Sequence record: PQ015379.1
Direction: 5' to 3' (one strand)
DNA length: 64,000 nt
The notes beneath the pieces were generated by a model that was given only the letters and a program-made list of their open reading frames with translations, had not been told where the DNA came from and searched no databases. This document shows, piece after piece, positions 34,250 through 49,738 of this stretch. The position numbers were made by a program, and so were the translations under genes. The stretch's first letter is position 1. Each line of letters starts with the position of its first letter.

Positions 34250-34255
34250 TTCCCC

Positions 34256-34290
34256 AAGCCCCGTTTCCTTTTTGGATTCGGGGCTTTTTT
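34256..34290 (+). terminator. Rho-independent terminator
   Basis: AAGCCCCG-tttcctttttggatt-CGGGGCTT followed by TTTT. Confidence 0.8.
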
Positions 34291-34308
34291 GTTTCCGGAG
34301 CAAATCGA

Positions 34309-34584: not shown

Positions 34585-34601
34585 GCTAGGTCCACCAAAG
34601 C

Positions 34602-34639
34602 AAAAGCCCCCGTTTCCGTTATGGATTCGGGGGCTTTTT
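34602..34639. terminator. Bidirectional terminator between convergent blocks
   Basis: AAAAGCCCCCG...CGGGGGCTTTTT; near-duplicate of the 34256 element. Confidence 0.85.
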
Positions 34640-34642
34640 CGT

Positions 34643-35083
34643 TTACGGCTTTCCTGCGGCTTTCTTGGCACGGCCCTGCAATTTGATCGTACGCTCACGC
34701 GCCTTTTCCATTTCCTTTTTCGACTTTTCCATCAGCTGCGTCAAATGGCGCACCTGTTCTTTGTCGTCGCGCCCTTCGGCTTTCTTGAGCGCCATTTTGA
34801 TTTTCACCAGCTTTTCCGTGTTCTGCTGCGAAAGTTTGGCCAGCAGCGATTTCGCTTTGGCCTTGCCGTCGCGGGTCATTACCCGGTTGTGTTTGCTGTC
34901 TTTAACCTCGACCAGTTTATTGCCGGTGGTACGGTGCGTGATACGCCCCAATTTACCCCAACGGCCATAACCCATCGATTGCAGGCCGAGCTTGCGGGCG
35001 CGGGCCGCGACGGCGCTGATTTTGCCTTTCTTGCCAGAAGTTTTCGACGGCTTTTTAACCGGCTTCGCTTTCTTGATAGCCAT
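34643..35083 (-). CDS. Very basic (Lys/Arg-rich) putative DNA-binding/core protein
   Basis: MAIKKAKPVKKPSKTSGKKGK...GYGRWGKLGRITHRT; GGAG SD. Confidence 0.7.
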   Translation of the reverse strand: MAIKKAKPVKKPSKTSGKKGKISAVAARARKLGLQSMGYGRWGKLGRITHRTTGNKLVEVKDSKHNRVMTRDGKAKAKSLLAKLSQQNTEKLVKIKMALKKAEGRDDKEQVRHLTQLMEKSKKEMEKARERTIKLQGRAKKAAGKP

Positions 35084-35441
35084 ACGCGGCTTTCTCCAAT
35101 TCATCGGTGATGATGCGGAACAGCTTCAGGCTATCTGGCCGGTCCACGATGTAAAGTTTGCGCCGCAATATTTCAGTGTGACGCTTTTGGATCACATAGA
35201 TTTCAACTTTTTCCTTGAAGTCCACATGGATGAAAAACTCATGTTCGTATTTGTACAGCTGGTAGGTGGCACGATTGAACATGGTCCCGTTGACGAAGAA
35301 AGCGCGCAGTTCGTACGGCACTTCCACGCGCATATATTTAACGGTCCAGTCCGGCATGAATTCCTGAAGCATCGAACCCAAGTTGCTCATGGTGCTCAAT
35401 TCGAGCGCGTTGGGTTCCGGAAACTTCAGTTCAATTTCCAC
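35055..35441 (-). CDS. Hypothetical protein
   Basis: 128 aa; MEIELKF... Confidence 0.65.
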   Translation of the reverse strand: MEIELKFPEPNALELSTMSNLGSMLQEFMPDWTVKYMRVEVPYELRAFFVNGTMFNRATYQLYKYEHEFFIHVDFKEKVEIYVIQKRHTEILRRKLYIVDRPDSLKLFRIITDELEKAAYGYQESEAG

Positions 35442-35973
35442 GATATTCCGTCCTTTTATCAGCGATGCGCTGATCAGAAACGCGGATGGATTGGCGCTTT
35501 TCCATGATTTGTTTGGTCAGCGCTTGGCGGCGGGCAGTCCACGTTTTCACCTGTGCAGGATCTTTCGGGCGCTTGCTATTCATGGCCGCCAATTTCTTCT
35601 GCAACGCACCTAGAGACTTCTGCTTTTTCTGCTTAAAGTTTTGTGCTTTCTTCACGTCGCGATGCAACGCGTTGTCAGCCCGGTGGTCGCTGTGTTGTTG
35701 CTTGGAAGTGGGATCGCTGGCCAGCGCCTGCTGTTCCTGTTCGACCAGCGTACGCCGTTTGGCCAGATTCTTGCGCAATTCTGCGCGGAACCAGTCTTCG
35801 GCAATCCCTTTGACCCGTGGCTTTTCCGGCACAGGCTCTTCGGCGCGACCCTCATGCAGGCGGTCGATGCGTTCGAAGAAATCACCAAAAGGATCACCGA
35901 AAAGTTCTTTGAAGTTGCGTGGTTCGACCGGCTGATCTTCGCAGGCGAAACCGTCAATAATGATTTCGGTCAT
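35431..35973 (-). CDS. Coiled-coil basic hypothetical protein
   Basis: 180 aa; ATGA-coupled. Confidence 0.65.
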   Translation of the reverse strand: MTEIIIDGFACEDQPVEPRNFKELFGDPFGDFFERIDRLHEGRAEEPVPEKPRVKGIAEDWFRAELRKNLAKRRTLVEQEQQALASDPTSKQQHSDHRADNALHRDVKKAQNFKQKKQKSLGALQKKLAAMNSKRPKDPAQVKTWTARRQALTKQIMEKRQSIRVSDQRIADKRTEYRGN

Positions 35974-36233
35974 CGTTGACGCCCTCGCTCACGACGGCCC
36001 AGCCAGTTGGTTTTCGACACGTGCATTTTGTCGATGTAATCGTGTGGGAAAGCCAACGCGCCCTGTGCACTGGTGCGCGTCTTGTCACGAAGCAGCGTCT
36101 TTTTCTTTTGACGCGGCATCTTTTTGATCATCTTGTCGTCGTCTTCCCACTTAGTCAGGCGGGCGCCCGAGTGTTGGGGATTTTCGACGCCATCGGCCTG
36201 CTTAGCGCGGCCTTTGATTGTTAGTTTTGGCAT
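35970..36233 (-). CDS. Small basic protein
   Basis: GAGGA SD; rich in K and R. Confidence 0.65.
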   Translation of the reverse strand: MPKLTIKGRAKQADGVENPQHSGARLTKWEDDDKMIKKMPRQKKKTLLRDKTRTSAQGALAFPHDYIDKMHVSKTNWLGRRERGRQR

Positions 36234-36240
36234 GGTGTCC

Positions 36241-36462
36241 TCACGGGCAGCGAACCGTGTCCTGAATATCCATTTGCCGTTTCTCGGCCCCTTCCAAAGG
36301 CGTGTCGATCAATCCGCTTTTCAGCCGGATTTTTCGCCGTTTCTTTTTGCCGGTTGCCTTGAGCGGGCGGCCTTCTTTTGCCTTGTCGAAACGAACTTCG
36401 GGGATTGCGTCCCAGCGTTCATCCGACCCGGCTTTGCCAGCCAACGAAATCAGAACTTCCAT
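36241..36462 (-). CDS. Small basic protein with leader MEVLISLA
   Basis: TAATG coupling; 73 aa. Confidence 0.65.
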   Translation of the reverse strand: MEVLISLAGKAGSDERWDAIPEVRFDKAKEGRPLKATGKKKRRKIRLKSGLIDTPLEGAEKRQMDIQDTVRCP

Positions 36463-36884
36463 TACTTGGCCCCGAATTCGATATAGCTTGGGGCGCGGCG
36501 GGCCACGCTGGCAGCAATCGCATAATCAGTGCCACGCACTTGCACAACCCGAGGTTCAAGTGCAAAGGCAGAAACCTTTTCGTTGAAAATCAGGTAGGCT
36601 TTCGTGGGGTTCGGAATGTGCAGGAACTGGCCCATGGTTGGAACCGCATAAACAAAGGTCACACGCTGATGGTTGCGATCTTCGACCTGTACAACAATCG
36701 GCGAATAGTCCTTGTCCATTTCACGGACCAATTTGATATCAGATTTCTTGCGATCCTCGATATCGATAACCTGCGGAAAAACATTGGCGAACAACGAGGT
36801 GTACGACTTCTTGAAGATATTGCGGATGCCTTCGGAAATACGTGCGCTGTTATCCACCGCCGCCAAAGCGAGCATCAGTTCCAT
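36462..36884 (-). CDS. Hypothetical protein with leader MELMLALA
   Basis: GAGGA SD; 140 aa. Confidence 0.75.
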   Translation of the reverse strand: MELMLALAAVDNSARISEGIRNIFKKSYTSLFANVFPQVIDIEDRKKSDIKLVREMDKDYSPIVVQVEDRNHQRVTFVYAVPTMGQFLHIPNPTKAYLIFNEKVSAFALEPRVVQVRGTDYAIAASVARRAPSYIEFGAK

Positions 36885-36932
36885 TTCATGTCCTCACGGC
36901 GCGAATTGAAGCCGGGTTTTTTAGGCCCGGCG

Positions 36933-36947
36933 CATACTATCAAATTA
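36933..36947 (-). promoter_or_regulatory. TAATTTGATAGTATG motif, candidate late promoter, followed by a hairpin
   Basis: Followed by GCCGGG-cctaaaaaa-CCCGGC. Confidence 0.45.
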
Positions 36948-36951
36948 CCGT

Positions 36952-39708
36952 TTAGTACCGGTCGCGATATTCTTCCAATTCGTCAGGGCGGGTTTGTTGA
37001 GCGTCGTAGATTTCGCGACGCAGACCGTGAACTTCATCAGCCTGATCAGCCCATTGGTTTTCACGAATGTTCGGCGTTTCCACGTCGAATGGTTGGGCTT
37101 CCGCTTCGTCATCGTCGGTGCTTTCGTCGAAATCATCCATGCCGACAAAATCAGCAATCTTTTCCAGAACTTCCAACAGCTTTTCGTTGAGTTCCAACGT
37201 TTTATCGCGCTGGGCCTCCACTTCGTCTTCGATACGCTGGCGGTTTTCTTCGTACGCTTCCAAAGCCTCTTGGTACGCTTCCGGTTCCATTTCGTCTTCG
37301 TCCGGATATTGCACGGCGCCCATGTCCATGCGGTTGTTCACCTCTTCCTGAACATCTACCGGCTGGATCATATCGCTGTTGTGAACCAAACGAGTCAGGG
37401 CCAGAATCGCGGTATCCAACGAATCCATGTTGGCCACCATTTTCAACAGCTTGCGAATCAGTAGCGGCAGTTTTTCCGGCGCAACCCAACCGATACCATC
37501 GGCCCCGTTGTTTTCCACCAGATCCATGCGGTACGTGATATCCGGTTTTTCGCCGTTGATTACGATTTTATTCAGCAGAGCGCCGAAGGTTGTGGTGCGC
37601 TGGTGGCGACGGCGGCCCATACCGGTTTGGAAGTGTTCGGCCACATCAAGCAAGTCACCCTCTTCGAACGTTTCCGAATCGAATTTCTTTTCCAGATGCA
37701 GCGGTTTTTCCAGCAGATTACCGGCGGCAACTATCAGCTGGCAAATCTCGACCATATCCTGCGATTCTGGAATCAGCGGCTCGCCTTCCCACGCCAATAG
37801 CGAAGGTATGATCGCGTTGATTGTGTCGGCAGTTTGCGAACCGAAAATGATACCGTTATCGGTCAGGTGCATTACAGATGGCAGGTTGAATTCTGCCAGC
37901 GCTTTGACATATTTCGGCTGCCACTGGTTAACCAGTTGCTGCACAACTTCGGTGTTATCGTTGAGCCAGTCACGCAGGCGCGGCAGGAAATCTTTGTAAT
38001 CTCGCAGTTTGCCCTGATCATACAGCAGCTGTTCAACCTGCGATTTCTTGATTTCATCGACCCACATTTCCACCCGACCATCCGAATCGAATTTGTCGAG
38101 CAAACGGAAAGCTTTACGGGTCAACGCGTTGGCCACGACGCCGGTCGGCGGAACCCACAACACGTTGGAATCCAACTTGCCTAGGTTGTCGATGTTGTAG
38201 CAGATGGACAGATTGGTGCCGCCCGACTGATAAATCATTTCGCCCATTTCTTCCGAACGTTCCGGGTCTTTGAAGTCCAGATTCATATCGAGAATTTCAT
38301 AGGCAGCTTTTTGCATCGAGGTATCATCGAGCAACAGCATGTGCCGGGCAGCACAGGCCATGGTGTAAAGTGCGTGGCCAACCCGTGGCAGTTTTTCCAG
38401 CACTTCTTTTGGCGGTACTGGATACACGCCGGTCATGATCATGCGGAAAACTTTCGAGTTCGAAGTCAGGTTGCTATGCTCAACCATGGCCTGCACACGT
38501 TCCAGCATTTCGGCCATCACGGGGCCACCCGCGATACTCAGTGAGGAAACCAAACTCAACGGCAGTTTGCTAACGGTTTTCATGTCGAGATTTTGGAAAC
38601 CTTCAAAGGCCCCAATTTCCCGACCAATGCGCGCAGGAACCGGGCGCAGATCAGTGCCGCTAGTGGCTTGGTTGTTGAATTCGTCAGCCATTTCGGGCAC
38701 GCCTTTAAGGGCCTCGACGATTTCGTCAATCTGCGTGTCGTGCAGCTTTTCCGCTTCGTTGGAATCGATGTAGTGGAAAATCTGCTGGGCAATGTGCTGT
38801 TTTTCTTCGGGGCCTTCGGCGTTTTTCAGGGCCACCACGCGCTGGCGGATGTAGTCAATCGCCAGTTCGGTATCCATCAGCGCGTCGTGTGCCGACAGAT
38901 TGTCATCGGTAGACTGTTCGTGCGTGAAACGCCCGCCCATGCCGTCGTCGTATAGCGTCTCAGCCATACGGAATTCATCGGACGGAATGTGCATGTTGAT
39001 TTGACGCAGGAAACGCGCCAGCACCAAATCAAAACCGGGAACCGGGTTGCCGTAGACGCGGGTTTCACGGCGATACAAAACGTCGCCTTTTCCGTTGATG
39101 AACGGCTTCAACAGGCAACGCGCTTTAGGCTTCTGGATATTTTTGTCGTCAGATGAAACCACGTAGGCAACCAGCGTACCTTCGGCCACGTCGTTTTTGA
39201 CGTAGTGCTGGTTAATGCCTGGGTTCAGTCGGTGTTCACCATCAGCGAGTCGCATGCAGCTGGTCAAATCCCAATCGCGACCGGTGCTCATGCCGATAAT
39301 GTCGTACGGGTGACAACTGATCACAACCTGCAACGAACCGCCTTTGGTATTCTGCAACTGCGGGTCATTGTCGAACGCGGTTTTTGCGTGTGGATCTTTG
39401 GCAATCACCTTGCCGATGTTGGTAACGTTTTTCTGTTCCTTATCGGTAATCTTTACGCATTTCTTCGCCAGATAATCGGTGGCCACGTAGCCAGCACGTT
39501 GCAGGGCACTGCGTACAGCAGGTGGAATGGTGAAATGTGATTTATGTTGCTGGCCGATATCGAAGTAGAGCCGATAACCTTTCTTGCCCGGCCCCTTTGG
39601 CATCATGGATTGCAACAGCTTCACAGCCGGGGCCTGCTTGTTCCAGTTACGGCGGTACTTGAGGGCCGTGCGCATCGACACGGCGGCAACCGCGAGTTCG
39701 AAATTCAT
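36952..39708 (-). CDS. Large protein with leader MNFELAVA and an N-terminal ISCHPYD...SCMRL domain; acidic C-terminus
   Basis: Start moved to avoid overlap with the upstream gene. The first ~250 aa are paralogous to 39713..41512. Confidence 0.8.
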   Translation of the reverse strand: MNFELAVAAVSMRTALKYRRNWNKQAPAVKLLQSMMPKGPGKKGYRLYFDIGQQHKSHFTIPPAVRSALQRAGYVATDYLAKKCVKITDKEQKNVTNIGKVIAKDPHAKTAFDNDPQLQNTKGGSLQVVISCHPYDIIGMSTGRDWDLTSCMRLADGEHRLNPGINQHYVKNDVAEGTLVAYVVSSDDKNIQKPKARCLLKPFINGKGDVLYRRETRVYGNPVPGFDLVLARFLRQINMHIPSDEFRMAETLYDDGMGGRFTHEQSTDDNLSAHDALMDTELAIDYIRQRVVALKNAEGPEEKQHIAQQIFHYIDSNEAEKLHDTQIDEIVEALKGVPEMADEFNNQATSGTDLRPVPARIGREIGAFEGFQNLDMKTVSKLPLSLVSSLSIAGGPVMAEMLERVQAMVEHSNLTSNSKVFRMIMTGVYPVPPKEVLEKLPRVGHALYTMACAARHMLLLDDTSMQKAAYEILDMNLDFKDPERSEEMGEMIYQSGGTNLSICYNIDNLGKLDSNVLWVPPTGVVANALTRKAFRLLDKFDSDGRVEMWVDEIKKSQVEQLLYDQGKLRDYKDFLPRLRDWLNDNTEVVQQLVNQWQPKYVKALAEFNLPSVMHLTDNGIIFGSQTADTINAIIPSLLAWEGEPLIPESQDMVEICQLIVAAGNLLEKPLHLEKKFDSETFEEGDLLDVAEHFQTGMGRRRHQRTTTFGALLNKIVINGEKPDITYRMDLVENNGADGIGWVAPEKLPLLIRKLLKMVANMDSLDTAILALTRLVHNSDMIQPVDVQEEVNNRMDMGAVQYPDEDEMEPEAYQEALEAYEENRQRIEDEVEAQRDKTLELNEKLLEVLEKIADFVGMDDFDESTDDDEAEAQPFDVETPNIRENQWADQADEVHGLRREIYDAQQTRPDELEEYRDRY

Positions 39709-39712
39709 AGAT

Positions 39713-41512
39713 TTAGCTCTTGTGTGCGTTAATTCGTTTTGCCAGATCACTGATTTTTTCATTCTTGTGATCGACCAACGAATCAAGGAAGTCTTGGATG
39801 TTGTGACGCTGGCGCAGCCAGTTGATGCCGTCGTTCAGTGCCCCGCTATTCCGGTGCGCTACCCACTGCAAAAGCTCGCCCAAAACTTTCTGGTTGTGAG
39901 TCGCCATTTGCGCCAGCTTGTCGAACGTGGCGGGCTTCAGTTCGGAGGCGTCTTGCAGCCACTGCGGATTCACGGCGGCCCAGTCAGGCGCGGAATCGAG
40001 CGCGGCGGAATACGGGTTGACATGCGGCTTGGTGAAACGGCGAATGGTTTCAGACCAATTGACGGTGCCCAAAATGTCGTAAATTTCTTCGTCCCAACCG
40101 GCAGGAATGTGCGCAGAACGAACAAAGATTTTCAGGTTGGCACGATCCGCTTTATCGTCTGCATCATCAGGCTTCAGCGACAGCATTGTGTGGGCCAAGA
40201 ATGCAAAATATTGGCGCAGGTGACGTGCACCTTCCAACTCGGATTCCTGAAGTTCTGGCGTCCACTGCAATTGCCCGGCGAGGAACAATTTACCGGCCCG
40301 TGCTAAGCCTTGGCCGTCAATCGAAGTGACGTTGCCCAGCCAGCGCGAATCGTAGCGCCCGAGGTTCAGCGCATGTTCGTAGTTGGTTTCGAATTTTTCG
40401 TAAGCATGCAATTCGTGATACGCGTCGTGTAGCTTTTTGCTGGTGTCGATCAGGATTTGCGCGTCGGTGCCAATCAGGTGGTCTACAACGTCGTACGATT
40501 TCGCTTCTGGATCATCACCAATCGCTTCGTCATAGGCAGCGCCCACTTCGTTCGCGTTCATGAAATTATTCAGATACACGCCTTTCAGCGCGTCGGTCAG
40601 CTGATACGGATCATCAAGGGCTTTCACCATGACGGAGAACCAGCGCAAATCGTTTTCGAACCAGTTTTCGAGGCCGCCGACTTTGTACAGATTTTTGCGG
40701 ACGAAAGTTTCTTTGTCTTCGGCCTTGTCGTAGTCCACCAGCAGGTGCAGACGATTGCCGCCGTCGATGTGTACTTCGTCGCTCAGTTTGTAGATGCCAT
40801 GGGCTGCCCCTTGGTTCACCTTTTTCAACCACTGATCGACCGTGCGGCGGAAGCCGGGAATAGGCTGGCCATACACGTGCGTTTCGACTTTGAAATAGAC
40901 GTGATTTTCATCGTCGTCTTTCTTGAACGGTTTGATCAGCAGACGCGCATGCGGCTTGTTGATATTTGTGTCTTTTGGACTGATCACGTAGGCGACCAGA
41001 GTCCCTTCCGCAACGGTGCCTGCCATGAAATGTGCACGCTCGCCGTGTTTACCTTCGTTTTCCGGGGTTGCCAGTCGCATACAGGTCGTGAAATCCCAGC
41101 GGCGCCCAGTAGACATACCGATCACGTCGTACGGGTGACAGGAAATAACGCAGGTGTATTCGTCTTTATGTGCCGACCTTTGCGGGTCGTGGCTGAATTC
41201 TTTGATGGCTTCCGCATCGCGCAGGATTTTACCGATACGAATTCGGCGTTTTCCATCAGGGGTTACAGCGATGCCGTTGATGTAATCCTCGACCTTGTAA
41301 CCAGCCGATTGCACGGCATGGAAAACTGCGGCAGGCACCACGACTTTATCTTCGCTGGTTTTGTTGATCGGCATGTACAGGCGATAGCCTTTGCTGCCTT
41401 TGGGCAGGAAGCGGCGGATCAGTTTCACACCGACCCCGTTTTTATTCCAGCCCTTCACGAACGGGCGCGCCACACTCAGGCGTACAGCGGCCAACGCCAA
41501 TTGTAATTCCAT
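39713..41512 (-). CDS. Paralogue of 36952..39708 with leader MELQLALA
   Basis: TGATG coupling at 41512; VISCHPYDVIGMSTGRRWDFTTCMRL...EGTLVAYV...KP.ARLLIKPF. Confidence 0.8.
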   Translation of the reverse strand: MELQLALAAVRLSVARPFVKGWNKNGVGVKLIRRFLPKGSKGYRLYMPINKTSEDKVVVPAAVFHAVQSAGYKVEDYINGIAVTPDGKRRIRIGKILRDAEAIKEFSHDPQRSAHKDEYTCVISCHPYDVIGMSTGRRWDFTTCMRLATPENEGKHGERAHFMAGTVAEGTLVAYVISPKDTNINKPHARLLIKPFKKDDDENHVYFKVETHVYGQPIPGFRRTVDQWLKKVNQGAAHGIYKLSDEVHIDGGNRLHLLVDYDKAEDKETFVRKNLYKVGGLENWFENDLRWFSVMVKALDDPYQLTDALKGVYLNNFMNANEVGAAYDEAIGDDPEAKSYDVVDHLIGTDAQILIDTSKKLHDAYHELHAYEKFETNYEHALNLGRYDSRWLGNVTSIDGQGLARAGKLFLAGQLQWTPELQESELEGARHLRQYFAFLAHTMLSLKPDDADDKADRANLKIFVRSAHIPAGWDEEIYDILGTVNWSETIRRFTKPHVNPYSAALDSAPDWAAVNPQWLQDASELKPATFDKLAQMATHNQKVLGELLQWVAHRNSGALNDGINWLRQRHNIQDFLDSLVDHKNEKISDLAKRINAHKS

Positions 41513-41901
41513 CAGCTGAAGTCCTTCGCAGGCTTGTAGACCATGAGCAGGGAACCCCACTCTTCTTTGAACAGTTTTTTCGTTTCTTCCAACGACGCGT
41601 TCAGATTCAGCGCCGGGCGGAAACCGTTTTTGTAAAAGACGTGCAGACTCGCAATGCTGGAAACCTGCCCGCCGATATCACTTTTGTATTTGCGCACGAT
41701 GCCTTTCAACAGGAAATCACCGTGCCCTTGACCACGATGTTGTTCGTCGATCACGTAGTCGGTGACGCTGTGTTTACATGGCGAGAATTCCCCGCCAGTG
41801 CGCACGCAAATGTACCCATATTCGGAACGAAATTCGGTCCCGAAATGTTCACCCCTGTCGGTGATCTTGATCGAGGCGGCCAGCGCCAGCGTCATTTCCA
41901 T
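41512..41901 (-). CDS. GNAT-family acetyltransferase with leader MEMTLALA
   Basis: VIDEQHRGQGHGDFLL (motif A) and VFYKNGF. Confidence 0.8.
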   Translation of the reverse strand: MEMTLALAASIKITDRGEHFGTEFRSEYGYICVRTGGEFSPCKHSVTDYVIDEQHRGQGHGDFLLKGIVRKYKSDIGGQVSSIASLHVFYKNGFRPALNLNASLEETKKLFKEEWGSLLMVYKPAKDFS

Positions 41902-41906
41902 TTCTT

Positions 41907-42824
41907 TTACTCCAAACCGTGCAGTTCACGTTCGCCGCTGGTCATCCAGCGTTTGCGCACGTAATCCAAAAAGCCTTTAGTGTCGAGACGTAGACGACGT
42001 TTCAACCGTTTGATCTTTTCAAGGTTTTCCAACTCAACCGGGAACTTCGCAAAGTCTGAAAGCTTGTTGAAATTGCGAACGGCGTCCGGTTGAATGTCTG
42101 CATACTTGATCATGTTGGTGATATCGCGAATCACCTGTCGCTTGCATTTGCGTTGCTCTTTGTGGCGTGCGCTTTTCATGAATTTGACTTCACGGTTTTC
42201 GTCACCACGGAACACGATTTGCGATGCGTCGTACCACGCTTCGAGCGTGTAGTCTGCGGCAGGTTGCCATTCGCTGGACCCGAATTTGCGTTTCTTTTTG
42301 TCAGATACTTCCAGCTTAACGGTCTTGCGTTTATCCAGATTGGCAAACGCTTTGAAATCGTCATACTGGAACATCGGAATGCCTGCGCGCTTAGCCAATA
42401 GGGCCAGCGTCAGCGAGTCATTCATTTTGTATTTACCGACTTCCTGCATGAAATGCAGTTCTTTGATGTAGCGCAGGCACGGGATGTACATTTTGTTTGC
42501 GAACAAACGGTCTTCTTTTTCGTCGTGGTTGACGTGCGCCTGATCAGCCCAGTAATCGACTGGCTTAATCTGATAATTCGCGTTCATCTTCTGGCCGTCA
42601 AGCACGAAAATAACGTGACCTTCGCCCGCCTCACTCTTGAAATACGCAGAATGTTTGGAGCGGGCCAGACTCAGGAAATACTGCGCGTCACCGAACGCAG
42701 ATTCAACGCCTTCGTTAGTGGCCGCCAATTTAAAGCGGTCGTTTTTCATTGCGGTAATTGCGTGCTCCATCGGAATCAGGTGATAGAGCACGCTGGAACC
42801 GGCAAGCGCCAGCATCATTTCCAT
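41907..42824 (-). CDS. Putative ADP-ribosyltransferase-fold protein with leader MEMMLALA
   Basis: VLYHL (strand-1 His), FLSLARS (S-x-x/S strand), FVLDG, DEKEDRL (E-x-E). Fold call is an inference. Confidence 0.5.
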   Translation of the reverse strand: MEMMLALAGSSVLYHLIPMEHAITAMKNDRFKLAATNEGVESAFGDAQYFLSLARSKHSAYFKSEAGEGHVIFVLDGQKMNANYQIKPVDYWADQAHVNHDEKEDRLFANKMYIPCLRYIKELHFMQEVGKYKMNDSLTLALLAKRAGIPMFQYDDFKAFANLDKRKTVKLEVSDKKKRKFGSSEWQPAADYTLEAWYDASQIVFRGDENREVKFMKSARHKEQRKCKRQVIRDITNMIKYADIQPDAVRNFNKLSDFAKFPVELENLEKIKRLKRRLRLDTKGFLDYVRKRWMTSGERELHGLE

Positions 42825-43132
42825 TATTTTTTCCTTGCGCGTGCGGTCGCCATTGCCGCACGTTTGAATTGTGCGAGTTTACGTTGAGCCATTTGCAATT
42901 GACGGCCAATAACAGCCAATTGCGAATCGCTCAGATGATCTTGGTTATATTGCTTTTTCAACCGTTCGATTTCTTCGCGCAAATGCGCCACGGTTGCACG
43001 GTAGGCGGCAGCGCCCGAGCCTTCGACTGCGCTGCTACGGGCCATGGCGTACATGGAGCCGGGGTGTTTCTTGATGTACTGCTTTTTGGCGTTAGACGCT
43101 TTTCCGTGAAACCAATGTTTCTTTTGAGCCAT
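42824..43132 (-). CDS. Small basic coiled-coil protein (no leader)
   Basis: MAQKKHWFHGKASNAKKQYIKKHPGSMYA; AGGTGG SD. Confidence 0.7.
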   Translation of the reverse strand: MAQKKHWFHGKASNAKKQYIKKHPGSMYAMARSSAVEGSGAAAYRATVAHLREEIERLKKQYNQDHLSDSQLAVIGRQLQMAQRKLAQFKRAAMATARARKK

Positions 43133-43154
43133 GATTGCCACCTACCTTGGGGAT

Positions 43155-43580
43155 TTAGTTGCGCCCGAGTTCCTTGCGCAGGACCGGAATGTCGGCCTGA
43201 ATTTCTTGGTAACGCTGTGCGAATTTACGGATCATCGCGGGCGACGGCTCCGGAACAGAACTGGCGGTTGCAACCTCGGTCCCCAGCAGATTATTTTGGG
43301 CCAGCAAATCGTCTTTGGTGCAGACGAAGAAAGCGTCAACCTGCGCCACCGGAATGCCCATGTAATAATCGCGTTCCTGATCGATGTTGGCCACGTCGAG
43401 CGCCAGATCGTAGGTGATGGTTTCGGCCTTCACGTTGGTGGCCACGACCTTCGCACGAATCGCGTGATCGTACAGGTTGCCAAGATTCAGCCGACGAATC
43501 GCCGGATGAAACCAGACTTCGGTGCCCACGGCGTACACTGGATATTGCGGTACAGAAGCGATAGCGATTTCAGTTTTCAT
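43155..43580 (-). CDS. Hypothetical protein with leader MKTEIAIA
   Basis: ATGA overlap with the stop at 43577 fixes the start. Confidence 0.7.
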   Translation of the reverse strand: MKTEIAIASVPQYPVYAVGTEVWFHPAIRRLNLGNLYDHAIRAKVVATNVKAETITYDLALDVANIDQERDYYMGIPVAQVDAFFVCTKDDLLAQNNLLGTEVATASSVPEPSPAMIRKFAQRYQEIQADIPVLRKELGRN

Positions 43581-43735
43581 GCGGCGCACACCATGTTGTC
43601 TGCGAGGTCGGGATGTTTGGCTTTGAATTCTTTCCAGCTGGCAACCCAGCGCTCAAGGCGTTCTTGGTTGGCCTTGAGGCGGGCGCTACGCTCTTCAGGC
43701 GTTTCGTTTTCGTAAATTTTGTTCAGATCAGACAT
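43577..43735 (-). CDS. Small hypothetical protein, 52 aa
   Basis: MSDLNKIYENETPEER...; coupled to the downstream gene. Confidence 0.55.
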   Translation of the reverse strand: MSDLNKIYENETPEERSARLKANQERLERWVASWKEFKAKHPDLADNMVCAA

Positions 43736-43749
43736 ACGAATTGGTTTGA

Positions 43750-43968
43750 TCACCGGACTTTTCCTTTTTGTGCACGCCGTGCTTGGCGCTTGGCCTGTTG
43801 AACGTACCATGGAACAGTCGATTTGGCGCCTGCGTAAGGATCAGGGCCTGCCACACCCCGGTCGCCACCACGGCCACCATTCCAGTCCGCACCCGGCAAA
43901 CCGGGTTCGCCTACGGGACCGGGTTCATCGGCATGGCCAATCAAAACGCCGTTCTCGAAAATATCCAT
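43750..43968 (-). CDS. 72-aa protein with a few collagen-like triplets
   Basis: AAGGA SD; GPVGEPGLPG and GDRGVAGP. Confidence 0.65.
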   Translation of the reverse strand: MDIFENGVLIGHADEPGPVGEPGLPGADWNGGRGGDRGVAGPDPYAGAKSTVPWYVQQAKRQARRAQKGKVR

Positions 43969-44036
43969 GATTGTTCCTTAGTTTTGTTGTACCGGATTGG
44001 TGTCAGCCCGCATCAGTTCCATTTTTTGGTCCCTAT

Positions 44037-44411
44037 TTATTGAGGCTTCCGGATCATCAGGGTTTCGCCGTTGGCGCCGCGACCTTTGGAAACAAAGCCG
44101 AACGTTTTGTAGAATTTCACCAGCTTTGCGGCCTTCGTTTGGGCGTCCATAGGCGCCGCTTCGAGCCGCACTTCGATCCCGGCTTTGTCCACCATTTTCA
44201 GGAAGTGTTCCATGGCAGCGCGACCAGCACCCGATCCACGTTTGTCGGCTGGGGTTTTCAGGGTTTTCAGGTCCACAAACGATTTGCCGTCCGAACGGAA
44301 TTCACCATCGTTGAACGTATACCAAATCGACGAATGACCGACTTTGATTTCGGTCATTTTCCCATGCTTCAAAACCAGCCCAGTGGTGGCAAGCGCGATC
44401 AGTAGTTCCAT
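44037..44411 (-). CDS. GNAT-family acetyltransferase with leader MELLIALA
   Basis: LKTPADKRGSGAGRAAM, VRLEAAP, LVKFYKTFGF. Confidence 0.85.
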   Translation of the reverse strand: MELLIALATTGLVLKHGKMTEIKVGHSSIWYTFNDGEFRSDGKSFVDLKTLKTPADKRGSGAGRAAMEHFLKMVDKAGIEVRLEAAPMDAQTKAAKLVKFYKTFGFVSKGRGANGETLMIRKPQ

Positions 44412-44692
44412 CAGGCTTTTTCCACGCCCGCACGGGTCATGACATAGGTTTCACGCATCAGAACCACACGGTCGCCGTCGTTGGCGAAAATCGAGAGGAC
44501 AGCTTTCGAACCCAGCGGCAGAATGCGGTCGAGTTGCTTTACGGCCTGCCGGGCAGTGGTGGCGTTGCCGCGACCCAAAAGGCTCAGGGTGTTTTCTTTG
44601 CGCACTTCGTAGTGCGTGACCTTGGAACCTTTCGGCAATTTGTCTACCGAAACAGGGTTACGGTTTTCAGCAACGGCGAGCATCATTTCCAT
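44411..44692 (-). CDS. Hypothetical protein with leader MEMMLAVA
   Basis: 93 aa; coupled at both ends. Confidence 0.75.
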   Translation of the reverse strand: MEMMLAVAENRNPVSVDKLPKGSKVTHYEVRKENTLSLLGRGNATTARQAVKQLDRILPLGSKAVLSIFANDGDRVVLMRETYVMTRAGVEKA

Positions 44693-46378
44693 TTATTCAG
44701 CACTCTTGGTAGCGAGGTCAATCGCTTTTTGGATTTTGGAATTCGGGCGGGTGTTGGTTTTTTCGTAGACCGGGATAAATACCGAAGGGTCGATATAGTT
44801 CGCGATTGCCGTGGTGGCCGTCACTTTCTCGCCAGCGAGGTGGCCGAGTTCCTTACCGATTTTCAAGCATTGATCTTCGATCCACTTATTGACCGTCACG
44901 TCTTTGGCGCGTGCACCGTGCGGGCATTTATCCATCAGCGCTTTGGCCATGGCCGTACCACGCAGCTTGCGGAATTTGTGGACGGTAAACCCTTCGGGGA
45001 ACCCAAGTTCACGAATGTACCCGTTCACCTGCGAGTTCGACAGCGGTTTGCCACGGAACGTAAACACATATTCCGTTGGCTTTTTGTCGTGGATGAATTC
45101 GGACATTGCGCCATGCAGCATTTCGGTCCGCTGATCGTCGAACTTGATCACGTGCTTTTGTGCCCCGGCCTTTTTGCCGAGATACTTGATAATCACACGC
45201 TGGTCATTCCAGTTCAGGTGCTTACGCAACAGGGTAGAAATGCCGTACGTGGTTTCACCGGCAGTCAGTGCACGGGTCGAACCAATACGCGCCGAAGTCT
45301 GGTAAATGGTTTCGAGAACGGCAGCGGCAGTACCGCGCAACGTGCCCGGACCTTTCGCCAAATCAGGCAACCATTTTTTGATGTACTTCGACATATCCGG
45401 CAGCATGTTTTGCACGATGCCGAACGATTCCACACGGCCTTCAGTGCGGGCCGCGATGGTGTAAACGTTGGTAGTGCTTTGGGCAAACGGTGCTTTGTAC
45501 TGGCAGTAATAAATCGTGGAACCCGGCGTATAGTTCTTGTTCATCGAACCAGCGCCCACCGGTTTATTCATCAGCTGTAGGCCGTCGCTGGTGAAATAGT
45601 TCCCTTTGTCGTCCATCCGGCCCACGAACCAATCCGGAATATCGTGCTGGATATTTCCCATTTGTTCACGGATATCGTCCACGTCCATCGTGTGCTCGCC
45701 CGAGGCCCGCACGATGTTGGCCACCGCTTTGTCAGCAATGGCTTTGCGCTGGCGGCGCATGTCCAAATAGTCTTGGTGCTCGCTCAGGTTTGATCCCAGT
45801 TCTTTTGCCTTGTCGCGCCACTTTTGCAGCACGGTTTCCGGCATGACGTTGCCCTTCACTTTGCCGTGAGTTTTCACGTGCTGTTCAAGGCGGTCGTAGA
45901 GTGCACTTTGCGTCGTGGATTCGGTGTGTTCGTCTTCGTGGATGAACATTTTCGAAATGTGCGAATCTTTGAAATAGCCGATGTTCTGCATCAGCCGTTT
46001 CGTCGCTGCCTCGGAACCGTTACGCGCCAGACGCACGTCGGTCAGGAATTGCAGCTGTTGCTTCGACAGGCCTTTGTCCTTGTCGAATGCTTTTTTCTTT
46101 TTCTTCAGGGCGTCGAAACACCCGTTGATGATGTGGTGGTATTTCTCGGCGCTCACATCCTCGCCCTGTTCAAGCATGGTCAACGTTTTGGAAAACGTGC
46201 GCTTGATCGCATATTGCTCAAGGAACGGCTGGGCCTGCACATTCCACTTTTTCAGCTTCGGCATGAACGATGTGCCGTAGTCGAATTCGGAGGCCTTGTA
46301 GATCGCCACCAGCAGCTTGATAAACGCGTCGGCTGATCCGGGCGGCGCTGGGGCAGCAGCGGCAATAGACATTTCCAT
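44693..46378 (-). CDS. Type IB DNA topoisomerase with a long N-terminal extension and leader MEMSIAAA
   Basis: Catalytic pentad in order: SARIG (R), YLGKK (K), HKFRKLRG (R), ELGH (H), IANYIDP (Y nucleophile); TYGISTL matches the topo IB T[FY]G..TL motif. Confidence 0.85.
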   Translation of the reverse strand: MEMSIAAAAPAPPGSADAFIKLLVAIYKASEFDYGTSFMPKLKKWNVQAQPFLEQYAIKRTFSKTLTMLEQGEDVSAEKYHHIINGCFDALKKKKKAFDKDKGLSKQQLQFLTDVRLARNGSEAATKRLMQNIGYFKDSHISKMFIHEDEHTESTTQSALYDRLEQHVKTHGKVKGNVMPETVLQKWRDKAKELGSNLSEHQDYLDMRRQRKAIADKAVANIVRASGEHTMDVDDIREQMGNIQHDIPDWFVGRMDDKGNYFTSDGLQLMNKPVGAGSMNKNYTPGSTIYYCQYKAPFAQSTTNVYTIAARTEGRVESFGIVQNMLPDMSKYIKKWLPDLAKGPGTLRGTAAAVLETIYQTSARIGSTRALTAGETTYGISTLLRKHLNWNDQRVIIKYLGKKAGAQKHVIKFDDQRTEMLHGAMSEFIHDKKPTEYVFTFRGKPLSNSQVNGYIRELGFPEGFTVHKFRKLRGTAMAKALMDKCPHGARAKDVTVNKWIEDQCLKIGKELGHLAGEKVTATTAIANYIDPSVFIPVYEKTNTRPNSKIQKAIDLATKSAE

Positions 46379-46785
46379 CATTGGCCCTTCTTTTTCATTC
46401 GGTTTTTCCAAAACGCAGCGGCGTCGTTGGTGTGGGAATCATCCGGGCGGAATTTGTAGCCGCTTTCCTTTTCGATTTGGTCGTACATCAGGGTCGCAAT
46501 GCCCTTGCGGCGGAAGTCTTTTCGCACTTCGACCGTGCCGACCAATTGCCCGTCCACGATGAACCCCATGGCATCACCCACAACTTCATCGGATGCTGCG
46601 TCAATGGCGAAAATCTGGCCCGCTAAATCATCCTCGCCCTTACCGTCGAACCATTCCAGAATACAGGCCCCGTGCTTGACGGTGTGCGTAGGCTTGTTGC
46701 GACGATTCGCCCGGCTTTGGTTTTTGATTTCCCACTTGCGCGGATCATCAGAAACGCTGGATGCAATTGTGATTTCCAGTTCCAT
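46378..46785 (-). CDS. GNAT-family acetyltransferase with leader MELEITIA
   Basis: VEVRKDFRRKGIATLMY; HTNDAAAFW. TGATG coupling fixes the start. Confidence 0.8.
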   Translation of the reverse strand: MELEITIASSVSDDPRKWEIKNQSRANRRNKPTHTVKHGACILEWFDGKGEDDLAGQIFAIDAASDEVVGDAMGFIVDGQLVGTVEVRKDFRRKGIATLMYDQIEKESGYKFRPDDSHTNDAAAFWKNRMKKKGQ

Positions 46786-47204
46786 CAGCGATCCTTGATA
46801 TAATCCATGCGGTTGAATTTGTTGGCGTAGCGGCGGCTGGCAATGTCGTCGGTAGGAATGCGGATGCCGACATAATAAACCGTCGAGTCCAAGCGATTCT
46901 GTTCCGGCTCCACTACCCGCCCCTTGGCATCGACGCACATCAGAAGAGTTTCGAGTGCGTCTTTGTCTTTTTCTTTGTACACCCGATAGCCATAGTACAG
47001 GCTGTATTTCAGGCGGTCGGCGTATTTGATCAGGCCGTCGTCGTTCTTCGGCAGATCATTTACGAAATTGCCACGCTTGATTTGAGGCAAATGCAGCAGG
47101 CGCTGGCCGAGGTCGCGAATGTCCGGATAGTTCCGGGCCAGACGAACCATCAGCCCGCCCGGCAAATACTTTTCAGCGGCAGCCAGAGCGAGCATCATTT
47201 CCAT
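46785..47204 (-). CDS. Hypothetical protein with leader MEMMLALA
   Basis: 139 aa. Confidence 0.75.
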   Translation of the reverse strand: MEMMLALAAAEKYLPGGLMVRLARNYPDIRDLGQRLLHLPQIKRGNFVNDLPKNDDGLIKYADRLKYSLYYGYRVYKEKDKDALETLLMCVDAKGRVVEPEQNRLDSTVYYVGIRIPTDDIASRRYANKFNRMDYIKDR

Positions 47205-47207
47205 TTT

Positions 47208-47831
47208 TTACACCGTTTTGTCGATAAGTGCCAACACTTGGCGGCGGACTTCTTCAAGGGGTTGCTGGGCGTCGATCACTACCCACGAATCGTCGATCAT
47301 TCCGTAGTAGGCTTCGCGCACTTCAGCGAAATAGGACAGCGGTTTTTTCTCGAATTCGTCGAGTTTACCGGCACGGGTCGCGTGCATGCGCTCGAAACTA
47401 ACTTCGGGCGGCAGGTCCAGCAGGATCGTCAAATCCGGCTTAATCAAATGGCCGTAATCGTCTGCCATTTGATGAATTTGTTCGGTGGCCTCACAGGTGC
47501 GCGTTTGGTACGCAAGGGCCGACCAGTAATAGCGTTCGGTGAAAACGTTGGTGCCGCTTTCCAGCGCCGGGCGAATTACAGCTTCGGTGTGCTGGATGCG
47601 GGCCGCGTACGACAGGAACGGCTGACACAGGGCGGGCACTTTCCCTTCGTAGTCGAGCATCAGGCGGCGCAGCGTTTCCGCGTACGGAGTCCCGCCCGGT
47701 TCGCGAGTGAAGGCCATCGGATAGCCTTTCGCAATCGCGTGATCGCCCACGTAAATCGAAGCCGTTCCTTTGCCCGCTGCTTCGATGGATTCCAGACAGA
47801 TGAATTTCCCGCGTTTTTTGAATTGCTTCAC
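47208..47831 (-). CDS. tmk: Thymidylate (dTMP) kinase
   Basis: FICLESIEAAGKGT, FTREPGGTP, FTERYYWSALAYQ, PDLTILLDLP; GTGA overlap gives the start. Confidence 0.93.
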   Translation of the reverse strand: MKQFKKRGKFICLESIEAAGKGTASIYVGDHAIAKGYPMAFTREPGGTPYAETLRRLMLDYEGKVPALCQPFLSYAARIQHTEAVIRPALESGTNVFTERYYWSALAYQTRTCEATEQIHQMADDYGHLIKPDLTILLDLPPEVSFERMHATRAGKLDEFEKKPLSYFAEVREAYYGMIDDSWVVIDAQQPLEEVRRQVLALIDKTV

Positions 47832-48400
47832 GTCAAAAATACCCGCTGTGTGCGTTTGATGTTGTGGCGTGCTTCGCCAGCCAGCCAAGCCAGTTTGCGA
47901 TACATCCGGTGTTTGGCCAAAATCGAGACTTGGTGAAACTTCGCTTTCTGGCTACAGCTGATCCGGCCCGTGGTTTCGCTCAGAATCAAAATGCCCACAC
48001 CCTCTGCTTTGAGTTCTTCACGAATTTCCGCGTAGCACCGTGATTTGGTGATCGATGGCGCGAACAGAAAATACAGCTTGTTCACGTGAGGCAGATAATC
48101 CCGCCATTTCTTGTCAGCCCGGAAATCAGCCAAACAGCTTTTGATTTCCACGCCGAAAAAGTTACCGGGATAATCAATCACCAGCGCGTCGAGCCGGGAA
48201 CGGCCCCAAGGCACGACCCCGACTTCTTTGTGCACCGAACAGGTTTGTTTGGCGTAGTAAAACGTCAACGCTTTGTAGAGTGCGCTGGTGATATCCGTGC
48301 GCGACATTTTCACAGAACCTTCCGACTGTTCTGCGCGTTTGTCATGTGCTTTCTTGGCGCGTGCCTGCTTACTGCGCGAGCCTTTCCGTGTGTATGCCAT
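47828..48400 (-). CDS. MmcB-like PD-(D/E)xK nuclease / DNA repair protein
   Basis: EVGV...RLDAL...GVEIKSCLADFRADKKWRDYLPHVNKLYF. Confidence 0.8.
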   Translation of the reverse strand: MAYTRKGSRSKQARAKKAHDKRAEQSEGSVKMSRTDITSALYKALTFYYAKQTCSVHKEVGVVPWGRSRLDALVIDYPGNFFGVEIKSCLADFRADKKWRDYLPHVNKLYFLFAPSITKSRCYAEIREELKAEGVGILILSETTGRISCSQKAKFHQVSILAKHRMYRKLAWLAGEARHNIKRTQRVFLT

Positions 48401-48412
48401 CGGTCCCCACTT

Positions 48413-49738
48413 TTAGGCAATGAGCCTCATGATTTTTGCGTACTCGGCCAGCAGGCCGTTACCGTCGTATTTCTTGATCATCGCCATCATGGCGTCGTGG
48501 TACTGTTCGTGCTTGTACCGCTGATCGTAGGAAGAACGGAAATCGTTCAGAATATTTACGGTATCTGCATCGCTGATACCGCCACGGCGCATGCGTCCGA
48601 TCAGGATTTTGAATTTCTCTTCGGTTTGCACCGTCATGAGTTTGATCGGGAATTTCGCCCACTTGGCTTTCAGCACCATGCGGTCGTCGGTGTAGCTGCG
48701 CATCGATTTGTAGAACTGATCCAGCGGCAGACAATACAGCTGCGGAATCTCTTTGAAGTCCGGCAACTCAACGTGGATCGACGGGCGCAGGTAAGTGGTG
48801 TAGAGCACTTCCGCGTCTTTCAAATCCACATCGCCACCGAATTTCTTTTTCAACGAAGCGTCAGTGAAAGTTTTCGTGGTTTTCAGGTGCACCGCGTGGG
48901 TCACGTTCCGATCTTTGGTCTTGATCAGTTTGATCGTGTATTCCGCATGCGGGAACATGTCTTTCAGCTGGCCAGCCAGTCGGTCGGTATCCTGTTCATC
49001 CAACGGCTTGTCGGTGTACCACGCGTTCCACGAAATCGCTTTGCCGTGCTGGTGTTCCAACGCAACAATCGCGTAAAACTCTTCGGTTGCTTTCCGTTGG
49101 AATTCTTCGTGGGTCGCGGCCTTGATGATGTGGAAACCGTAGCTATTCAGCCTGCGCATTTCCGCTTCGAACAGCGGGCCGTGGTCATCATGCAGAAGCT
49201 CAGCGGCTTTGGCAGGATCAACGGTGCGTAGTTTCATCGCCTTGTACATGGCTTTCAGGTGAATCTGTTCGTGAATGATCGTGTTGGTGAACAGCACACG
49301 GTCAACCATCGCCGATTCATGCACGTGCATGAAATACACCGGCTTTTTGTTCACGAATTTCAATTCGGCGAGGCCCCAAATGTTTGGGTTGCGACTCTTC
49401 ACGAATTTGACTGGCGGGCATTCGTTGTTGAAATACGCGTTGTTGTAATAATCGTACAGCAGCGGCACGCTTTCGAACGCCGGTTTGAACAGCATGTACG
49501 GCGGGTTGTCCGGATCAGGCTCTACCGACCAAAGCTCTTCGCTCATATTGTGCAGCGCGTTGCCTTCTTTCAGCGTCAGTTTGAAAATGATATCCGGTGC
49601 ATCTTCGTGTTGCACGATATAGACTTGCCCGTGGCGGTACATGGTGAAGCGGTCGCCCTGCACCATGAGCAAATCATATTCGTCGTTAGCTTTTCCGTAG
49701 GTGAGGTCGCGATCACCCATGTAGCGATAGTTGGCCAT
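48413..49738 (-). CDS. SprT-like zinc metalloprotease with an N-terminal domain shared with 56046..57119
   Basis: YNNAYFNNE, TIIHEQIH (HExxH), HDDHGPLFEAEMRRLN. Confidence 0.8.
   Translation of the reverse strand: MANYRYMGDRDLTYGKANDEYDLLMVQGDRFTMYRHGQVYIVQHEDAPDIIFKLTLKEGNALHNMSEELWSVEPDPDNPPYMLFKPAFESVPLLYDYYNNAYFNNECPPVKFVKSRNPNIWGLAELKFVNKKPVYFMHVHESAMVDRVLFTNTIIHEQIHLKAMYKAMKLRTVDPAKAAELLHDDHGPLFEAEMRRLNSYGFHIIKAATHEEFQRKATEEFYAIVALEHQHGKAISWNAWYTDKPLDEQDTDRLAGQLKDMFPHAEYTIKLIKTKDRNVTHAVHLKTTKTFTDASLKKKFGGDVDLKDAEVLYTTYLRPSIHVELPDFKEIPQLYCLPLDQFYKSMRSYTDDRMVLKAKWAKFPIKLMTVQTEEKFKILIGRMRRGGISDADTVNILNDFRSSYDQRYKHEQYHDAMMAMIKKYDGNGLLAEYAKIMRLIA

Follow-up and report, generated by a model that had tools for sequence, protein, structure and literature searches.

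Organization of the gene cluster

The sequence analyzed here (the window) is a 64,000-nucleotide stretch that corresponds to positions 62001-126000 of sequence record PQ015379.1, the 313,683-bp genome of Pseudomonas phage HRDY3; genome-wide tests used the whole record, and coordinates are those of the window unless given as record positions. Judged by its capsid protein, which is 85% identical to that of Lu11, 61% to that of PaBG, ∼48% to those of the Erwinia Y3/Dickeya JA group, and ∼33% to that of phiRSL1, HRDY3 is a Lu11-like jumbo myovirus. The region from 36241 to 47204, located between the tail/baseplate and portal/terminase genes, consists of exactly 15 annotated genes, all on the minus strand. 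The products of 12 of these genes begin with variants of a single octapeptide, M-x-Φ-x-Φ-A-Φ-A (where Φ is a hydrophobic residue), referred to below as the leader, whereas the other 3 lack it. These 12 starts had been listed in an initial annotation of this DNA, which viewed the octapeptide as a candidate capsid-targeting and processing tag; each of them was recovered on the minus strand at the position listed and reads as given there. They coincide with the annotated coding sequence starts of the record, with the sole exception of the topoisomerase gene, which is annotated one codon upstream (MMEMSIAAA). Because the second ATG of this gene (46376-46381, minus strand) provides both a TGATG overlap and the canonical leader register, the start chosen in the initial annotation is the better one. 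Stop/start overlaps, cited there as fixing several starts independently, are indeed present as TGATG at 41512, 44411, and 46785, as well as at that second topoisomerase ATG (46378).

Searches of the proposed cargo proteins against Pfam, PHROGs, and NCBIfam returned nothing except weak GNAT matches and an integrase domain. The latter is found in XDJ15083 (44693..46378, minus strand; 561 amino acids [aa] from the second ATG), in which the leader MEMSIAAA is followed by a Pro/Ala linker. Its earlier designation as a type IB topoisomerase agrees with a match to the Pfam family Phage_integrase (E = 2e-7, above the gathering score), which marks a catalytic domain of the tyrosine-recombinase type, and its orthologs from Lu11, PaBG, NCTB, and RSL1 have been classed as phage-specific topoisomerase I (PMC7824862). 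The leaders of topoisomerase orthologs include MNVHIAVA in Lu11, MEISIAAA in the relative L014, and MQTSLSAV and MHISLSAV in PaBG-like sequences.

The 305-aa protein XDJ15076 (41907..42824, minus strand; leader MEMMLALA), initially labeled ADP-ribosyltransferase (ART)-like, has no match in Pfam, PHROG, or NCBIfam and only chance-level matches in a PDB sequence search. Its structural model (mean predicted local distance difference test score [pLDDT], 84.3) is consistent with that label: the N-terminal domain has a predicted DarT/Tpt1-like fold, with Foldseek matches to DarT (7omv; E = 4.8e-4, probability 1.0, template modeling score [TM] of 0.42 to 0.46) and Tpt1 (7yw4; TM, 0.64). Both DarT and Tpt1 are members of the ART superfamily. 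The residues that are invariant among the homologs are L-Y-H at 13-15, R55, and E102/E104. The sole segment of the model with pLDDT below 50 is residues 1-8, i.e., exactly the leader, which is retained in 31 of the 31 homologous clusters, down to 27% identity (in one of them in a shortened form, and as MKTNISIS in the most distant one). The gene directly upstream, with a stop/start overlap, codes for the basic (net charge, +16) leaderless protein XDJ15077 (102 aa; 42824..43132, minus strand).

The two large proteins, XDJ15073 (918 aa; 36952..39708, minus strand; leader MNFELAVA) and XDJ15074 (599 aa; 39713..41512, minus strand; leader MELQLALA), share a ∼250-aa N-terminal domain (40% identity over 249 aa), which in XDJ15073 is followed by a variable acidic C terminus. 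The domain belongs to a virus-only family without a match in Pfam, PHROG, or NCBIfam, comprising 1,894 representative clusters (at 50% identity) at E ≤ 1e-3 and 1,262 at E ≤ 1e-10. It is common on large viral contigs; in cellular genomes, it was seen only on two contigs from metagenome-assembled genomes among 185,579 species genomes. In nearly all cases, the domain starts with residue 1, and the C termini behind it are variable and sometimes repeat-rich; its invariant residues include S-R-H-P-Y-D (S-C-H-P-Y-D in HRDY3), R, W, and S-C. An Ala- or Ser-type leader is found at the start of nearly all 46 family members that were retrieved. One distant member, P0136, is encoded on a contig of only 2.5 kb.

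Three smaller leader-bearing proteins were initially assigned to the GNAT family: XDJ15075 (129 aa; 41512..41901, minus strand; MEMTLALA; Acetyltransf_7, E = 8e-4), XDJ15081 (124 aa; 44037..44411, minus strand; MELLIALA), and XDJ15084 (135 aa; 46378..46785, minus strand; MELEITIA; Acetyltransf_1, 20.6 bits versus a cutoff of 20.7). These labels are only weakly backed, as the profile matches (E = 1.6e-4 to 5e-3) are all below the Pfam gathering cutoffs. The broader statement that the leader is attached to about nine unrelated families held up in that, in BLASTP comparisons of the protein bodies, no relationship was detected other than that between the two large proteins. The remaining leader-bearing genes, all on the minus strand, code for XDJ15071 (73 aa; 36241..36462), whose leader MEVLISLA (36439-36462) corresponds to MNILLTVA in Lu11 gp217 and MELLISLA in the relative L018; XDJ15072 (140 aa; 36462..36884; MELMLALA, MKIQLAIA in Lu11 gp216); XDJ15078 (141 aa; 43155..43580; MKTEIAIA), which also contains an internal VATAS site (43260-43274); XDJ15082 (93 aa; 44411..44692; MEMMLAVA, MKIMLATA in Lu11 gp204); and XDJ15085 (139 aa; 46785..47204; MEMMLALA, MKLYLTTA in Lu11 gp202).

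The two other leaderless proteins, XDJ15079 (58 aa) and XDJ15080 (72 aa, with a Gly-rich collagen-like start), are encoded at 43577..43968 on the minus strand and resemble Lu11 gp207 and gp205 at their N termini. Together with XDJ15077, they could be cargo partners, chaperones, or immunity factors. A scan for promoters and terminators from 33.5 to 51 kb of the window found sites no more often than in shuffled sequence. In the interval 34001-50000, the AT skew is strongly negative (−0.11 to −0.18) over the late block on the minus strand, unlike that of the neighboring plus-strand block at 27 to 34 kb.

Sequence constraints on the leader

A genome-wide scan for the motif, which the initial annotation had suggested, revealed a strong enrichment at gene starts. 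The pattern M[EKN][VLMFTI].[LI][ASTG][LVIA]A has 13 matches in the six reading frames of the whole genome, compared to 0.33 expected from composition, and its chance expectation at the 481 starts is 0.018. All 13 matches fall at annotated starts, 12 in the cluster and 1 elsewhere (XDJ15235, see below). With a weight matrix built from the leaders, these 13 score at least 16.3 bits, whereas the next start-codon-anchored site scores 9.3 bits and is not a gene start. Among 49 distinct leaders, Ala is found at position 8 in 48 and at position 6 in 43; these two positions and Leu/Ile at position 5 are the most informative ones, while position 2 is polar, position 3 is hydrophobic, and position 4 is loose.

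In the HRDY3 and Lu11 leaders, the codons for Leu, Ala, Ile, and Gln are scrambled at the conserved positions, with Leu drawing on six codons, Ala on four, and Gln on both of its codons, and with the Ile codons all in use as well, and the 30 nucleotides upstream of the leader starts show no conservation. The variation at third codon positions reported initially is thus confirmed and, taken together with the unrelated protein bodies, indicates that selection acts on the peptide.

This bears directly on the view that the leader is an artifact of the nucleic acid or of its history, i.e., a translation-initiation element or a 5′ exon spread by cassette recombination, with the peptide itself being functionless. 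Such an origin would fit the tight coupling of the genes through TGATG and TAATG overlaps, and homogenization could explain the genome-specific variants (dialects) of the leader described below. It is nevertheless extremely improbable, given the scrambled synonymous positions, the unconserved upstream sequence, the persistence of the peptide pattern down to 27% identity of the bodies, and the fact that the switch from Ala to Ser in this peptide occurs as a class.

Predicted leader-like protease sites in head proteins

The second half of the leader (Φ-A-x-A followed by a small residue) recurs in the capsid, portal, and scaffold proteins, the very proteins in which the initial annotation had proposed to look for it. 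In a strand-aware set of 462 open reading frames (ORFs; 99,212 aa), the motif [LIVM]A[TVLI]A[SA] is found 34 times, compared to 6.2 ± 2.5 times (maximum, 15) in 200 within-protein shuffles, a 5.5-fold excess. The excess is located in the leaders, the capsid, portal, and scaffold proteins, the protease, and a few proteins that carry sites within their first ∼50 residues; roughly 8 of the 34 matches, in hydrophobic segments and in proteins that have no obvious connection with the head, appear to be background.

The HRDY3 capsid protein contains a single copy, NQIATA↓SS, at residue ∼72 (here and below, the arrow marks the predicted cut), and the protease has one copy near its N terminus. Two scaffold-like proteins, annotated as ATPases, contain seven copies of Φ-A-[T/V/I]-A-S. 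In the portal protein XDJ15096 (53459..55408, minus strand), the predicted site EY-LATA↓ASGG (residues 43-46; 55271-55282) is found at the junction of a variable N terminus and the conserved body. These sites are positionally conserved across Lu11, PaBG, Y3, and NCTB: the portal site reads LATA↓AG in Lu11, MATA↓AG in L014, and EATA↓GT in PaBG, the capsid site is IATAS in HRDY3 and VATAS in Lu11, and the scaffold sites are conserved site for site in Lu11. For the PaBG capsid protein, a site APSA taken from a five-sequence alignment was replaced by EAVAA on the basis of an 80-sequence alignment.

The PaBG capsid protein has been reported to lose ∼20% of its mass at maturation, and several other virion proteins of this phage are processed as well (PMC7412058). 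The predicted cut in HRDY3 would remove 72 of 368 residues (19.6%) and thus fits that loss (PMC7412058). In SPN3US, the site of the prohead protease as defined by mass spectrometry has V at P4, A at P3, Glu at P1, and S at P1′ (PMC10052503). The HRDY3-type site agrees with it at P4 (Val/Leu), P3, and P1′ and differs at P1 (Ala versus Glu), and cleavage after the second Ala is therefore the most coherent interpretation. The placement of the cut after A-x-A in the initial annotation is likewise the one most consistent with the aligned capsid, portal, and scaffold sites.

Another protein with such sites is XDJ15044 (20211..20459, minus strand), encoded among the tail genes, which has two motif copies (ELATAS and EMATAS) ahead of a Cys-x2-Cys segment. 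With only 82 aa, it is far too short for a DNA ligase, as which it is annotated; it is a candidate protease substrate and may be a processed virion protein. The scaffold-like protein is a single ORF in Lu11 (gp067, 634 aa) and PaBG (gp82, 643 aa) and two ORFs in HRDY3, in different frames and 20 nucleotides apart (XDJ15236 and XDJ15237; record positions 226749-228724); this split could be genuine, result from recoding, or reflect a frameshift in sequencing. The ATPase label of these proteins comes from PHROG 20988; they carry an acidic stretch of Glu/Asp, Cys-x2-Cys pairs, and numerous predicted sites for the protease.

Prohead protease and leader copies in the head module

The candidate processing enzyme, XDJ15232 (record positions 224776-225666), is assigned to PHROG 18299, "head maturation protease" (E = 1.9e-95); in Pfam, it has no match, and a PDB sequence search with it gave only chance-level matches. 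In an alignment of 32 of its 42 homologs, His148 and Ser202 are invariant, and their order and spacing are those of T4 gp21. When the structural model of XDJ15232 (pLDDT, 76.7) was compared with BFVD, many predicted prohead serine proteases, including COG3740 and Peptidase U9, were among the matches (E = 1e-6 to 1e-4). On the basis of the PHROG match, the invariant residues, and the model, HRDY3 encodes a predicted prohead serine protease of the HK97/T4 fold. An N-terminal extension of ∼30 residues, with its own predicted site, NQIAIA↓SAG, distinguishes the HRDY3 protease from the enzymes of Lu11 and of most other homologs; it is reminiscent of the N-terminal peptide that T4 gp21 removes from itself (PMC9958956).

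The 13th leader of HRDY3, MEMMIALA↓ASPL, belongs to the 120-aa protein XDJ15235 (record position 226324). Its gene, the only one outside the cluster to match the pattern, is located in the head-assembly module, between the genes for the head maturation protease and the scaffold-like/major head proteins. Two further genes in this stretch of the genome encode altered leaders: XDJ15226 (record positions 218579-219871), upstream of the protease, has a shortened one, MNIALA↓ASP (MIISLAAA in the Lu11 ortholog), and XDJ15230, two genes before the protease, has the variant MIIALAWA (MFISIAWA in Lu11). In genomes of the PaBG, NCTB, and L131 types, the entire leader cluster adjoins the protease-scaffold-capsid genes.

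The Pfam domain KMPT-N is matched by XDJ15226 and by the SprT-like protein XDJ15088 (48413-49738, minus strand), and XDJ15098 (record positions 118046-119119) is annotated as "KTSC domain protein." PaBG gp89, the SprT-like protein at the position of XDJ15088, begins with the leader-like sequence MELAIAS, whereas XDJ15088 itself does not, which suggests that genes can acquire or lose leaders.

The genomic setting is also where a different destination for the tagged proteins, such as the lumen of the tail, the baseplate, a membrane, an export apparatus, or a host or phage protease that degrades them in a regulated manner, has to be considered. Such an address would be in line with the placement of the HRDY3 cluster between tail/baseplate and portal/terminase genes and with the similarity of A-x-A to the signal peptidase I site. 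However, 8 residues with neither a basic n-region nor a long hydrophobic core cannot serve as a Sec signal. The motif is also embedded in the capsid, portal, and scaffold proteins, an additional leader copy is found in the head module, and the cluster is next to the protease-scaffold-capsid genes in PaBG-, NCTB-, and L131-type genomes, all of which makes another destination very unlikely. Two specific candidates of this kind were discarded. For a Sec signal cut by signal peptidase I, only A-x-A fits, the leader being 8 residues long, with mostly Glu at position 2 and the fold beginning at residue ∼11; for a lipobox or a prepilin-type leader, 8 residues are too short for a lipoprotein signal, and there is no lipobox Cys at the end of the leader.

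Leader dialects in related phages

The leader is found throughout Lu11-like phages and on numerous metagenomic contigs of jumbo phages, each genome having a dialect of its own, of either the Ala or the Ser type. The syntenic cluster of Lu11 contains 13 leader-bearing starts of the MKIQLAVA type and a more divergent one in gp215. The bodies of the Lu11 proteins are close to those of HRDY3; for example, behind the predicted cut, HRDY3 has GSSVLYHLIPMEHAIT where Lu11 has GSSVLYHLIYMEHAIT. Relatives from IMG/VR retain leaders as well, in sets that are of the MEMM type, of the MKVNIALA type, or mixed. Ser-type leaders, such as MKIISISA, MKISFSLK, and MHISLSAV, are found in NCTB, PaBG-like, and other contigs. 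Contig L131 carries a run of ∼15 genes with leaders of the MKI[NH]ISIS type, immediately upstream of genes whose products resemble the protease, XDJ15235, and the scaffold in their N-terminal sequences, and in contig L107, ∼11 of 12 consecutive genes have a leader of the MxIQLSLS type. In the small sample of genomes compared, Ser-type leaders are paired with Ser-type capsid sites (VTSA in NCTB and SVSVSSA in L055) and Ala-type leaders with ATA sites.

A concerted charge switch at position 2 between HRDY3 (Glu) and Lu11 (Lys) was also considered and dropped: in a third lineage, this position is variously occupied by K, Q, E, R, N, or D, so the Glu/Lys difference is kept only as a dialect tendency. 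In RSL1, no shared leader was found around the topoisomerase gene, nor was one found beside RSL1-like capsid genes.

Proposed role of the leader

Taken together, these observations suggest that the octapeptide M-x-Φ-x-Φ-A-Φ-A is probably an N-terminal head-loading and processing leader, a functional analog of the capsid-targeting sequence (CTS) of phage T4. All computational predictions of the initially proposed head-loading interpretation that could be tested came out in its favor. We infer that the leader proteins are packaged, docked, cleaved, retained in the head, and ejected, in a sequence of events that could be as follows. The cluster would form a tightly coupled operon on the minus strand that is expressed together with the structural genes, and the flexible leader would dock the cargo on the core of the assembling prohead, its partner there being the scaffold, the groove in which the prohead serine protease binds its substrates, or both. 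Once the shell is complete, the protease would cut after the second Ala (with Φ at P4, Ala at P3 and P1, and a small residue at P1′), so that the mature protein would begin at residue 9. The same enzyme would trim ∼72 residues off the capsid protein and ∼46 off the portal protein and would shred the scaffold at seven or more sites. The freed cargo, which would include the type IB topoisomerase, the protein with the DarT/Tpt1-like fold, three weakly GNAT-like proteins, two large proteins with variable C termini, and several small ones, would remain in the head with the DNA and enter the host at infection.

Several observations weigh against this scheme. The virion proteome of PaBG, the only one available for the group (a gel analysis of 14 abundant bands), lists no ortholog of the cluster proteins. 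Lu11 gp209, found at the position of XDJ15078 and matched to it by gene order and N-terminal resemblance, has no leader. In the XDJ15073/XDJ15074 family, the residues just behind the leader are conserved, too, so residues 1-10 could be part of the fold in that family. In a Foldseek comparison of XDJ15232 with the PDB, no match was significant, the one with the best shape being the solved structure of T4 gp21 (E = 0.8; TM, 0.44). The aligned capsid site of the L032-L034 clade, EVIA↓S, does not have Ala at P3, and in the Erwinia/Dickeya clade, where clear leaders are not established, the site is a different one (xGL[ST]). Finally, the leader sites favor Leu or Val at P2 and Ala at P1′, whereas the internal sites favor Thr and Ser, respectively, so that the two classes are related but not identical; as the internal sites were chosen with the motif itself, their logo is partly circular.

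The same systematic difference at P2 and P1′ enters into the assessment of the main rival explanation, according to which the octapeptide is a processing-only propeptide, i.e., a cap removable by the protease that, for example, keeps the enzymes inactive or marks them for trimming, with entry into the head being directed by other regions of the individual proteins or by partner proteins. Positions 5-8, which make up the conserved half of the leader, constitute the protease-like motif, and SPN3US packages most of its head proteins uncleaved, so targeting and cleavage are separable (PMC10052503). On the other hand, the bodies are unrelated and offer no other shared feature that could direct ∼13 proteins, 8 residues are unlikely to inhibit enzymes of several folds, and a bare cleavage site would require neither the constraint on positions 2-4 nor the genome-specific dialects, in addition to which the leader sites depart from the internal ones as described. 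A processing-only role therefore appears unlikely.

Beyond its proposed head-loading role in HRDY3, the octapeptide could be a general protein-packaging code of a large clade of jumbo phages, with coevolving dialects, on a hypervariable effector cassette that was ancestrally located beside the protease-scaffold-capsid genes. This wider reading is tentative and falls slightly short of being the probable one. Under it, genome dialects such as MEMMLALA, MKIQLAVA, MKVNIALA, MKINISIS, and MxIQLSLS would coevolve with the prohead protease or the scaffold, and the switch in the class of the cleavage residue from Ala to Ser would be part of this coevolution.

Comparison with known packaging systems

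The T4 prohead protease gp21 cleaves after Glu. No sequence similarity was found between the T4 CTS and the HRDY3 leader, in which position 8 is Ala in 48 of 49 cases and never Glu, and the leader is therefore best regarded, from its sequence, as an analog of the CTS and not as its homolog. In T4, the CTS comprises ∼10 aa, and small N-terminal peptides are removed from IPI-III and Alt by gp21 (PMC9958956). The likeness lies in a short N-terminal peptide (∼10 aa in T4 and 8 aa in HRDY3) that is attached to nonessential enzymes or effectors and ends at a (in HRDY3, predicted) prohead protease site, and in the use of the same protease to trim the capsid protein (by 65 aa in T4 and by a predicted ∼72 aa in HRDY3) and to degrade the scaffold; the T4 cargo, too, includes an ADP-ribosyltransferase (PMC9958956). 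In addition to the lack of a sequence relationship, the HRDY3 system, known from sequence alone, differs in having a predicted Ala at P1, in carrying its tag on at least 13 proteins, compared to two with a conserved CTS in T4 (IPII/IPIII), and in having its leader genes in one hypervariable cluster.

Sites cut by the PhiKZ and SPN3US proteases (gp175 and gp245, respectively) resemble those of HRDY3 in having Val at P4, Ala at P3, any residue at P2, and Ser at P1′ (PMC10052503). In phages of this type, the portal, capsid, and ejection proteins are all processed, and the propeptides contain multiple sites (PMC10052503). P1 is Glu in these phages, whereas Ala (Ser in some clades) is predicted in the HRDY3 group; their propeptides comprise 20 to 254 residues and are dissimilar, in contrast to the uniform octapeptide of HRDY3; and they represent a phage lineage and a capsid protein other than those of the Lu11/PaBG group, to which HRDY3 belongs. 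In the case of phage P1 DarB, an N-terminal segment suffices to load the capsid with a large enzyme, or with a reporter, that is then coinjected (PMC9024508), but this signal has ∼30 residues, is described for one protein, and is not linked to a shared cleavage motif; the P1 capsid protein is cut after Glu120.

Polymorphic effector systems, such as the MuF-type toxins of phage heads, combine a conserved N-terminal trafficking part with variable C-terminal payloads. The XDJ15073/XDJ15074 family is similarly organized, with a leader, a constant ∼250-aa N-terminal domain, and highly variable C termini, but no sequence or family link between MuF and this family was found.

Implications

In the searchable literature, there is no paper on HRDY3, and a leader is mentioned in none of those that deal with the Lu11/PaBG group. 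The principle of loading proteins into the head is already known from T4, P1 DarB, and the propeptides of the phiKZ type, whereas the octapeptide, its predicted Ala/Ser specificity at P1, the number of proteins that share it, and its spread and dialects among jumbo phages appear to be undescribed there. If confirmed, the leader would be a second, independent instance of the T4 capsid-targeting principle and would define a new specificity of prohead proteases, with Ala or Ser instead of Glu at P1. It would also provide a compact tag of 8 residues with which reporter proteins could be loaded into the capsids of Pseudomonas phages, and the dialects of individual genomes represent a natural experiment on the coevolution of a signal and its receptor.

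For the biology of Lu11-like and related jumbo phages, confirmation of the head-loading role would yield a simple sequence rule to recognize the proteins that are carried in, and probably injected from, their heads. This rule would cover a topoisomerase, a protein with a DarT-like fold, and acetyltransferase-like proteins, most of which are currently annotated as hypothetical, and would give meaning to a virus-only family of ∼1,900 clusters. Should the octapeptide prove to be a packaging code, the tag alone would reveal the injected proteomes of hundreds of uncultured phages.

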